Origin: Salpingoeca rosetta
Taxonomy: Eukaryota > Protista > Choanoflagellata
Reading direction: 5' to 3'
Length of the DNA stretch: 64,000 bases
NCBI GenBank assembly: GCA_033442325.1
Contig: JAWQFM010000013.1
Coordinates: 1,267,065-1,331,064, forward strand
The notes below the pieces were generated by a model. That model saw only the letters and a program-made list of their open reading frames with translations, did no database searches and was not told where the DNA came from. This document shows positions 59,241 through 62,200 of the stretch, piece by piece. Numbering within the stretch: the stretch's first letter is position 1; the number at the start of each line of letters is the position of its first letter. Position numbers and translations under genes: made by a program.

Positions 59241-62200
59241 CTACGTTGAATTGGTCGATGATGACGATGCTGCTGGCTGGTTCAATAGCGTGACTTTTGT
59301 AGGTGACACCTGCAGAGCCAAAGGAAGAAGGTGAAGCCATGAGAGTCAAACTTCAAATGTGTAAATGCATGTATGCGCGCACAGGTGTTTGCCTGCTGTG
59401 CAGACCTTCTCCCTTTTGTTGAATTTGATCCTCACACAGACACACTTACACTTACACTTACACTTACACTTACACTTACACTTACACACTCTCTCTCTCA
59501 CGCGCACACACACACACACATTTGCGCGTTTCAGCGCCACTCACTCACTCACCAAGACGCCATGCTTGGGACGGCACGAAAAGTATTGAAAGTCGGCCAC
59601 GGTGCCGTTGTTGAGACCAATGGGGCGATCCAACTCAACACCGCAGCGCGGGCCAGGTTTGATCTGCGATTGCCAACAAGTGAATGCAGAAAGGAGAGAA
59701 GTGGAGGGGAGAGTTGTGGTGTGATAAAAGTATGCAGGCACGCGGTGGCTTGTGAGGGGGCGATGGACACACATGACAAGAACCCTGGCTGAGGCAACTG
59801 TGAGTGCACAAACAGTGAAGCTGGAACTCGCTGAGGACGCAACAGCGCTGACTGATTGCTCTCTTGCTTTGCTTGCAGGCAAGCAAGACAAGACAAGACA
59901 CATGGAACACACAGAACACCGAGGAGGAAATGTGCACAAGAGAGACATTGCACATCAACACGCACCGCATGTGGGCCATAGAAACGAAGCGTGCCCTCGC
60001 CATATCCCGTGACAGTCACACGTGATCCTTCCCTGCCGATGAACTGGGGGTAGGACGGGCCGTCCCTAGTGTGCACGCGTTAAGGATTTGCAGTGAAAAT
60101 GATGCAGACAGAATCACAGGAATGAGAAACAAAATTAAGAAATGAATGTGTGTATGTCTCTGTGCGTATGTTTGTATGTGTGTGTATGTTTGAGTATGTG
60201 TGTGCACGCGCGCGGGAGAAAAGCGACAGCAACTGCAGTGACAACCATCTTACACACGCACACGCGCGCGGAAACTCGACAACGTACTCGTGCAGTCTGA
60301 GCATGTGTCTGCTGTCTTCATGCACTTCCATCTCGCGGCACTTGTACATGTTGAGCTCCTTGCGAATGGCAGCCTGTGTGTGTGTGTGTGTGTGTGTGTG
60401 TGTGTGTGTGTGTGTGTGTGTGTGTGTGTGTGTGTGTGTGTGTGTGTGTGTGTGTGTGTGTGTGTGTGTGTGTGTTTGCGGTGGGTGAATGAGAGTGCAT
60501 GAGCAGGTTGTTCCTGGTCCAGCAATTTCAGGCATGGACACATGACCGGTCACAGCACATGACGCAAGCGTCACACAATAACGGCAGCTGTCAACTGGTG
60601 AATTCGCACCTTTTCCTCTCTTGTCAGCCGTGTCCAGGTTGGATCAGCCCTGATAGGTGGTGACATGGAATGCGTTGAGCGCGTGGGAGGAATACGCAAA
60701 GTTGCAAAGTCGCAAAGTCCAAATACACGAATACAGGCACGCACGCACACACACGCACATGTTTGCACGTGTAGGCATTCGCATACGCACGCGCATATTC
60801 AACAAACATGCTCTTCACACTCTATAAAGCTTACTGCCGATCGTGCGAAGAAATGCCGTCGACAACGGTGACTTGCGGCGTCGTGTTGAACTTGAGCAGA
60901 ATCCTGCGCTCAATCAACTCAGAGACGGAAGCACGCTGTGCAAGCTGTTCAAGGGTGATGATGGGAGGGGACGAGGACGACGAGGAGGACAACGAGGAGG
61001 GCAAGGAGAGAAAGTGGGCAGTAATTATTGTGAGTGAGCAGGTGACCGATGCAACAGGCACTCTGACACGAGGCTCTCGTGCACAATACATTGCACCACC
61101 CCCACAACAACAACAACACCGATACAGCAACACAAGCCAAAGGCACGACTCAACGATAACTAATACACCAACAGCAACACCACACAGCACAACAACAGCA
61201 ACAGAGGAGTTGACAGGAAACGCCCAGCACCTTGCGCTCGAGCGTGTTCATGACGACTTGCTTTGAAGCCGTCTGCTCGTATGTCTCCGTGCGCACGTGC
61301 CGTGTGCCGGCCTGGTCACGGAAACTGAGCCGGCGCTTCCTGCGTGTGGACCGTCTTCGCCGCCGTGTTGCTCTGCGCACAGGGCCATCGTCACCACCAC
61401 TGCCATCACCGCCGTCATCACCGGTTGTGCTCTCTTGTCCCACTATTCCTTCCTCCGTCTCAACATCTTCCTCCTCTGTGATGGTCATCATCCCTGTGCT
61501 GTCGCCACCTGCAATAGTTGTCCGTCCTTCCGCGGCCTCGCGCGCAACTTCGCGCCGGAATTGGCGAATCCTAGACACGGAATCCTGCAGCACGGTGTGC
61601 GTGAGCGTGTGATAGGGTGTGTGTGTGTATGTGAGTGTGTACGTGAGTGTGTGCGTTAGTGTGCGTTAGTGTGCGTGTTTGTGCGTGTATGTTGGCGTGC
61701 ATGTGTGAATGTGTGTCCGTGTGCATGTGTGTGTGTGTGTATGTCACGTGATGCAGCGCAAAGGCACCGTGCAGGGTATCAGCTTGTTGTGCAGTTTGCT
61801 TGCAAGCAAGCACCCATGAAACACGCCAGGTGCTTACCCTTCGACGCAGACGCGTTCCACGCTTCAGTATGCTTTTCAGTTTCTGAATGCAGGTCGATAA
61901 CGTCACGGAAGCAGAACGTGAATCAGGCACGGAGGACAGCGTGAGGACACAATCACAGGCACATCGCTGGTGGGCATAAGCACTCCCAAAAAGGCAAGAT
62001 GAACAAAACGAACCAGAGTAACACACCCACATTCACACACACACACACACACACACACACACACACACACACACACACACACACACACACAAAAGCAAGC
62101 ACACACAAAAGCAAGCACACACACACACATGAACACATGAACACAGGAGCATGAAACAAGTACACTCACGCGCTGCTGGCCGTCGACGGTGACGAGAAAG

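Follow-up and report, generated by a model that had tools for sequence, protein, structure and literature searches.

The complex of PP1 with cofactors of the Phactr family is the best-understood case of a cofactor that confers sequence specificity on this phosphatase. In Phactr1, the overlap between an RPEL repeat and the RVxF-type docking motif is said to make the binding of G-actin and of PP1 exclusive of each other (PMC7599070). For CAP-Gly domains, the replacement of Lys or Asn of the GKNDG loop by Ala is reported to harm binding to EE[Y/F] tails (PMC3806363), and in the choanoflagellate Monosiga brevicollis the RTKC receptor kinases end in a CAP-Gly domain (PMC10263333). The present analysis concerns PTSG_05702, a gene of Salpingoeca rosetta that joins a Phactr-type PP1-docking tail in frame to a CAP-Gly domain. 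The gene lies on the minus strand of a 64,000-nucleotide (nt) stretch of assembly GCA_033442325.1 (contig JAWQFM010000013.1, positions 1,267,065 to 1,331,064 of the forward strand), referred to below as the window, in whose coordinates all positions are given.

Gene structure and transcript evidence

PTSG_05702 is deposited as a protein of 904 amino acids (aa) under the entries EGD74004.1, XP_004993567.1 and UniProt F2UAZ1. It is named "hypothetical protein" by NCBI and "CAP-Gly domain-containing protein" by UniRef, where it forms a singleton cluster. Alignment of the protein to the enclosing locus by tblastn (window coordinate = 68826 - locus coordinate) places the gene from about 64825, past the end of the window, to 59241, and the public model ends with exactly the exons found in the window, which contains residues 186-904. 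When exon c was used as a query against 1.84 billion representatives, a single full match was returned, namely residues 616-733 of PTSG_05702 at 100% identity. The model of the fusion gene is already public and not new as such; its Phactr part is unannotated, the precomputed Pfam list naming CAP_GLY only, and in the literature searched the gene is not named and the combination of Phactr and CAP-Gly is not described.

The seven exons designated c to i occupy 61584-59241, have GT-AG borders throughout and form, once joined, one open frame that closes with TAG at 59243-59241. The intron between exons f and g (60287-60066) is in phase 2 and joins ...RLH-E to DGPSYPQF.... Reading through this intron gives 68 codons without a stop, and the gene therefore encodes no canonical Phactr end. 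An in-frame fusion across this phase-2 intron had been proposed in a first-pass annotation of the window, and the exon borders, the open frame and the public 904-aa model all agree with it.

The same annotation had proposed a check by RNA across this junction. Reads and contigs of four runs were mapped on 58960-60373, beside a 100-nt (CA)n run at 60375-60475; for the joints 5' of exon f, the evidence consists of the public model and the length of the X4 contig. The joint between exons f and g, in which 60288 is followed by 60065, was found in runs from three studies: run X4 has it in a contig of 2299 nt at depth 174, the initial 2113 nt of which precede exon f, run X7 in a contig of 151 nt, and the RNA sequencing run X19 in one raw read, whose mate orientation fits a minus-strand RNA. 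The g-h and h-i joints are present in X4 at a depth of about 189, and h-i is also present in X7. The X4 and X7 contigs were counted as RNA because they lack introns exactly at GT-AG borders, which is possible only for spliced RNA. Over 60112-60255, within the f-g intron, depth is zero in all four runs. The in-frame fusion is therefore real at the RNA level. Two other candidates, a wrong joining of two genes and an alternative end, were rejected on the basis of the spliced joints, the intron without depth and the lack of a stop after exon f.

Two side observations concern the RNA of this region. The g-h intron (59664-59965) is kept in a minor X4 contig at a depth of 24.5, the spliced form having about 189; a transcript that keeps it would be frameshifted and encode an incomplete CAP-Gly domain, and the contig looks like unprocessed RNA. 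Over 58960-59151, the mates of X18 and X19 reads are oriented oppositely to those of the reads on exons f and g. These reads probably stem from a convergent, kinase-like gene on the plus strand that ends near 58858, and the 3' untranslated regions (UTRs) of the two genes probably overlap. In addition, long (CA/GT)n microsatellites occupy several introns and flanks of the gene (58868-58937, 60375-60475, 62021-62129, 62696-62791 and 63846-63993), one of which ends a single base away from the acceptor AG of exon f.

The Phactr-type tail and the RPEL repeat

In phmmer searches, the segment 739-812 aligns with Phactr1 as crystallised with PP1 (6zee, E 6e-18; 6zef, E 5e-16). Identity to a Phactr1-like protein of lamprey is 47% over 133 residues (BLASTP), and over the last 90 residues it ranges from 51 to 58% against animal Phactrs. 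Invariant columns in an alignment of eight sequences include W, TRLT, KAAIRKELN and EMEVHE. The complete Phactr string is present: the RVxF-type motif LLKF (749-752), the phi-phi, Arg and Trp (W775) motifs, the amphipathic helix and a His-rich tail in which all three histidines are kept. PMC7599070 lists 30 positions that contact PP1 or belong to the pocket; at these, 20 residues are identical and a further eight are changed conservatively (K517R, I520L, R521K, L/V528, A529V, F560Y, L574M and F577L in the numbering of Phactr1). The kept contacts include F752, R769, W775, L778, K783, I786, R787, E789, L790, K794, E797, H801, H806, R809 and H811, and the string as a whole is nearly intact.

Docking of PTSG_05702 on PP1 is consequently likely, and a composite pocket of the Phactr type is probably kept as well. 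These two predictions are the best supported of those concerning function. Micro-exon b may provide a second PP1 contact. It encodes the only SILK-type motif of the protein, S604-I-L-K607 (61873-61862), and SILK is a known accessory PP1-docking motif. The pattern [GS]IL[KR] occurs in none of 159 animal Phactrs.

The RPEL content of the protein is reduced. With a profile made from 106 repeats of animal Phactrs, a single repeat is detected, at residues 728-750 (29 bits), in which RA stands in place of RP. With all filters off, the same profile finds nothing further, apart from a six-residue vestige, RRLSFR (699-704), at the position of RPEL2. Animal Phactrs, in contrast, possess four repeats, one N-terminal and three C-terminal. 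Exon d alone gives a weak match to the Pfam RPEL family. The repeat at 728-750 overlaps LLKF, so that the RPEL3-like arrangement is kept, and gating by G-actin is possible. Since there is a single repeat, a cooperative complex with several actin molecules cannot form. As a separate observation, RRLSF (residues 699-703, 61335-61321, exon c) conforms to a loose RVxF pattern in which Ser is the x residue, and may represent either a further PP1 motif under the control of phosphorylation or a chance match.

The position of the tail within the protein departs from that in the rest of the family. The first-pass annotation had stated that animal Phactrs end at the PP1-binding sequence, and most of the 120 animal matches listed do end in ...TRFHRP, whereas in PTSG_05702 another 92 residues come after H811. 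The same combination was sought elsewhere by word-index searches with the last 180 residues as the query, covering proteins of 497-1582 and 190-604 aa. The matches listed were animal Phactr1-4 only, covered 46-48% of the query (63% in one case) and had RPEL as their sole Pfam domain. A fused relative should outscore them; none appeared, and hence there is no second protein with Phactr and CAP-Gly parts among the matches listed for 190-1582 aa.

Environmental sequences gave a similar result. A metagenome scan with the single PTSG_05702 protein produced no match. When JGI metagenomes were scanned at the DNA level with a tail profile (alignment A2), 80 loci with Phactr-type tails were identified. 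None of these has a CAP-Gly domain in any frame, and those with a complete tail match stop directly after the tail. Contig MKWU01057671.1 (433-1000) contains a Phactr-type tail exon, an intron rich in GT microsatellites that resembles those of S. rosetta, and a last exon ending canonically in ...YHKP and a stop; it may encode a protist Phactr without CAP-Gly. Look-ups in the ESM Atlas yielded weak leads only. No described Phactr with a CAP-Gly domain was known to the first-pass annotation, and none has emerged from the matches listed, the 80 loci or the literature searched.

The CAP-Gly domain, the probable anchor and the feature table

The C-terminal domain is a complete CAP-Gly domain, as had been stated earlier. 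Residues 825-888 match Pfam PF01302 over profile positions 2-65 of 65 (E 4.6e-19, 68.5 bits against a cut-off of 26.5), and exon h alone reaches E 3.8e-12. An AlphaFold2 model of residues 805-904, built from an alignment of 23 sequences, has a mean predicted local distance difference test score (pLDDT) of 84, with values above 90 in the core and low values in the linker at residues 805-824. In Foldseek, the top 45 matches of this model are all CAP-Gly domains, and p150Glued and CLIP-170 superpose with TM values of 0.87-0.92 and a root-mean-square deviation of 1.2-1.4 A. The fold is confirmed at the level of the predicted structure.

In its ligand groove, the domain deviates from those that bind tubulin or EB tails. 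The loop reads GLNNG instead of GKNDG, as had been noticed from the start, and the groove Trp is additionally replaced by Arg 851, while Ile stands at the position equivalent to F52. Gln precedes the YF motif at a position where many domains hold a basic residue. The Asn at loop position 3 and the YF motif itself are kept, and the change from Asp to Asn at loop position 4 is also found in CLIP4 domains of animals. Binding of EEY/F tails is uncertain because the groove Trp, the loop Lys, the loop Asp and the basic residue before YF are all substituted. The domain probably binds something other than a canonical EEY/F tail, or binds its ligand weakly, and canonical targeting to microtubules or EB tails appears doubtful.

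The nearest CAP-Gly domains are located in the tails or inserts of multi-domain signalling proteins of protists and not in CLIP or p150. The top-scoring one belongs to P0162, a 1407-aa protist protein from a Logan contig that combines a kinase, a PDZ domain, three tandem CAP-Gly domains with Arg for Trp and a tyrosine phosphatase. P0167 has a kinase and three CAP-Gly domains, and P0168 a PDZ and a CAP-Gly domain. In P0172 of Choanoeca flexa, a kinase and HYR are followed by a C-terminal CAP-Gly domain that is 53-58% identical to that of PTSG_05702; this architecture is the one described for the RTKC kinases of M. brevicollis. The residues common to this signalling-tail group, which is defined in this analysis and not in the literature, are R/K for the groove Trp, GY..G, G.H and NNG, the last as part of G[KR]NNG in the nearest domains. 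A short maximum-likelihood tree (96 columns) places the domains of PTSG_05702 and C. flexa within a clade of ten (bootstrap 92, approximate likelihood-ratio test 95), apart from the CLIP-type domains of animals. As they group with CAP-Gly domains of choanoflagellate and protist signalling proteins, the CAP-Gly exons look like a lineage-specific module added at the 3' end of a Phactr-type gene.

At the other end of the protein, residues 2-25 form a hydrophobic stretch (mean Kyte-Doolittle hydropathy of 2.5 over residues 2-20) that is followed by RIRDARRRKRE. This stretch is a probable signal anchor, and since the basic cluster comes after its helix, the rest of the protein would face the cytoplasm. 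About 700 residues of the middle region are mostly disordered by composition, and for the full-length protein the model in the ESM Atlas reaches a pLDDT of 0.44. The features of the gene are collected in the table below. The next gene upstream, outside the window (locus 1379-3636), encodes a 205-aa protein with a faint EF-hand match.

Table. Features of PTSG_05702, listed from the 5' to the 3' end of the gene.
Feature	Position	Strand	Basis
Two 5' exons, residues 1-185, hydrophobic N-terminal anchor	beyond window end, up to ~64825	-	public model
First exon of the public model, hydrophobic stretch and basic cluster	~64825-64379, outside window	-	public model
Long exon, residues 186-511 plus 1 nt, low-complexity, S/T/Q/D-rich, probably disordered	62801..63776	-	acceptor cag/CTT at 63776, donor CAG/gt at 62801; composition
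Exon a, residues ~512-600, ...STIRFQKK..., ...FTKWMDWVN...; no family match	62170..62438	-	
Micro-exon b, 45 nt, basic peptide, SILK-type motif	61838..61882	-	
Exon c, residues 616-733, acidic/basic low-complexity, RPEL2 vestige, first 6 residues of the good RPEL	61231..61584	-	
Exon d, residues 734-770, remaining RPEL (RA..SEL), LLKF 749-752, phi-phi strand TVVD, Arg motif R769	60835..60944	-	
Exon e, residues 770-783, Trp motif W775 in ADPTWTRLT, start of amphipathic helix	60610..60649	-	
Exon f, residues 784-812, amphipathic helix and His-rich tail (AAIRKELN...EMEVHEDSRHMLRLH), then phase-2 donor; animal Phactrs end here	60288..60373	-	
Fusion intron, 222 nt, GT-AG, phase 2	60066..60287	-	spliced out in RNA
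Exon g, residues 812-845, ~13-residue linker (EDGPSYPQFIGRE), then first CAP-Gly strands; Pfam start residue 825 = 60028	59966..60065	-	
Exon h, residues 846-882, CAP-Gly core, R851, GLNNG 861-865 = 59618-59604	59553..59663	-	
Exon i, residues 883-904 and stop, last CAP-Gly strand (Pfam end residue 888 = 59292), Ser-rich tail	59241..59309	-	
3' UTR, at least this long	58960..59240	-	X4 contig 1 unbroken from exon i to 58960 and further

Proposed function and comparison with known systems

The interpretation favoured on balance is that PTSG_05702 encodes a membrane-tethered PP1 regulatory subunit of the Phactr type, with a choanoflagellate-type CAP-Gly module beside its substrate surface. The exon structure, the splice joints in RNA and the domain content are established. 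From the N- to the C-terminus, the protein consists of a probable signal-anchor helix, a mostly disordered region with the SILK-type motif, the overlapping RPEL and RVxF motifs, the Phactr string, a linker of about 13 residues and the CAP-Gly domain. The docked string would build a composite substrate surface on PP1, and the CAP-Gly domain would be tethered within a few nanometres of it. By analogy with spinophilin, in which a PDZ domain follows the PP1-binding string, the CAP-Gly domain could be an extra module for peptide binding, by which the holoenzyme is positioned or substrates are recruited. It was probably gained by exon shuffling within the choanoflagellate lineage, in which domains of this type form the tails of receptor kinases and phosphatases. 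Competition of G-actin with PP1 may persist through the single RPEL repeat, with less cooperativity than in animals.

Several points weigh against this interpretation. The RPEL repeat, with its Ala for Pro, scores 22.3 bits against the Pfam cut-off of 23, and two of the 30 mapped PP1 positions are changed non-conservatively (E527T and R537Q). The tail is free at the C-terminus in animal Phactrs and in the complete environmental loci, while here 92 extra residues follow it and may disturb the composite surface. No library type is recorded for X4 and X7, and the exons of the N-terminal anchor lie outside the window, the X4 contig entering them by about 320 nt according to an arithmetic estimate. 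Finally, the binding of PP1, of actin and of a CAP-Gly ligand is in each case predicted from the sequence.

The first-pass annotation had gone further, with a model in which G-actin gates PP1 through RPEL, and in which binding of the CAP-Gly domain to EEY/F tails of alpha-tubulin or EB proteins targets the holoenzyme to microtubules or their plus ends, for example at the collar or flagellar base. As a whole, this model is now unlikely. Its actin-sensing half stands insofar as one RPEL repeat overlapping LLKF is kept, but that repeat is of the RA variant and stands against four in animals, the RPEL2 position is vestigial, and the cooperative complex is excluded. Its microtubule half draws on the CAP-Gly fold, the Asn at loop position 3, both residues of YF, the animal precedent in CLIP4 for Asn at position 4, and the fact that the nearest solved structures are the tubulin- or EB-binding domains of CLIP-170 and p150Glued. 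However, Leu replaces the very Lys of GKNDG whose change to Ala is reported to harm EEY/F binding (PMC3806363), Arg 851 replaces the groove Trp, Gln replaces the basic residue before YF, and the domain groups away from those of CLIP and p150, which leaves microtubule targeting in doubt.

A different role for the domain is conceivable. In choanoflagellates, tails with an R-for-Trp CAP-Gly domain might bring receptor tyrosine kinases, tyrosine phosphatases and the PP1 holoenzyme of PTSG_05702 to one common C-terminal-peptide ligand, in which case a CAP-Gly domain some 13 residues from the PP1 pocket would amount to built-in substrate recruitment. This proposal is speculative and has a low probability. 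If true, no cofactor of the Phactr type before PTSG_05702 would have possessed a substrate-binding domain of its own, and the specificity pocket of Phactr/PP1 would predate animals.

It is improbable that PTSG_05702 is a PP1-docking scaffold without cytoskeletal sensing, in which a relic RPEL repeat serves as a flank of RVxF and the CAP-Gly domain binds a lineage-specific, non-tubulin partner common to receptor kinases and phosphatases. The decayed RPEL2 position, the change of RP to RA and the absence of an N-terminal RPEL would fit such a scaffold, as would the clustering (92/95) of the CAP-Gly domain with kinase-, PDZ- and PTP-linked domains that have R or K for Trp. Nevertheless, the R, E and L of the RPEL core and its hydrophobic positions are all kept, the repeat reaches 29 bits against the animal profile, and the N-terminal repeat of a lamprey Phactr is likewise of the RA variant.

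It is very unlikely that the protein inhibits or simply anchors PP1 and is not a specificity subunit: the tail is a free C-terminus in almost all relatives seen, which suggests constraint, and F577 and L574 of Phactr1 are replaced by Leu and Met, but pocket residues are kept well beyond the needs of the RVxF-W string alone, and the flexible linker begins only after H811, the last contact residue given in PMC7599070. An artefact, whether a wrong model merging neighbouring genes or a rare read-through splice, can practically be set aside, because the single raw X19 read and the X4 and X7 contigs of unrecorded library type are outweighed by a joint seen in the runs of three studies, a depth of 174 against 0 within the intron, 2113 nt of upstream sequence in the spliced contig and the lack of a stop or alternative end past exon f.

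With the favoured interpretation of a tethered Phactr-type subunit, PTSG_05702 would place a peptide-binding domain right behind the PP1 pocket, together with a membrane anchor and a SILK-type motif. A cofactor of a Ser/Thr phosphatase thereby joins the choanoflagellate signalling proteins with CAP-Gly tails, and the ligand of this CAP-Gly type becomes a concrete question. S. rosetta is transfectable and editable. The find covers one gene of one species whose model was already deposited, and its function is predicted from comparison of sequences.

Among known systems, the CAP-Gly domains of CLIP-170, p150Glued and KIF13B share the fold of the PTSG_05702 domain, 38-44% identity, the loop Asn and the YF motif; they differ from it at the groove Trp (Arg in PTSG_05702), the loop Lys (Leu), the loop Asp (Asn) and the basic residue before YF (Gln). 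Spinophilin and neurabin have a PDZ domain in place of CAP-Gly and an F-actin-binding domain in place of RPEL, and they remodel the PP1 groove in another way; their sequence relation to PTSG_05702 is confined to the docking string. In yeast, the PP1-binding domain of Bni4, a targeting subunit of PP1 (Glc7), is called related and functionally replaceable by C-terminal sequences of Phactr1 in the statement of PMC7599070 that cites Larson 2008. By this description, Bni4 shows that the docking module is used outside animals. Bni4 is not known to contain RPEL or CAP-Gly.

The closest counterparts correspond to the two halves of the protein. Like PTSG_05702, the RTKC-type kinases of M. brevicollis (PMC10263333) and P0172 of C. 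flexa are membrane-anchored signalling proteins that end in the same type of CAP-Gly domain; unlike it, they possess a tyrosine kinase and a large ectodomain, lack the PP1-docking string and have K or R at loop position 2 instead of Leu. Animal Phactr1-4 (6zee, 6zef) differ from PTSG_05702 in that it has one RPEL repeat, a CAP-Gly domain after the tail, an N-terminal anchor and a SILK-type motif. They share with it RPEL3 overlapping the RVxF-type motif, the phi-phi, Arg and Trp motifs, the helix and the His-rich tail. The retention of nearly every pocket residue of the holoenzyme in a close relative of animals suggests that this specificity surface is older than animals.

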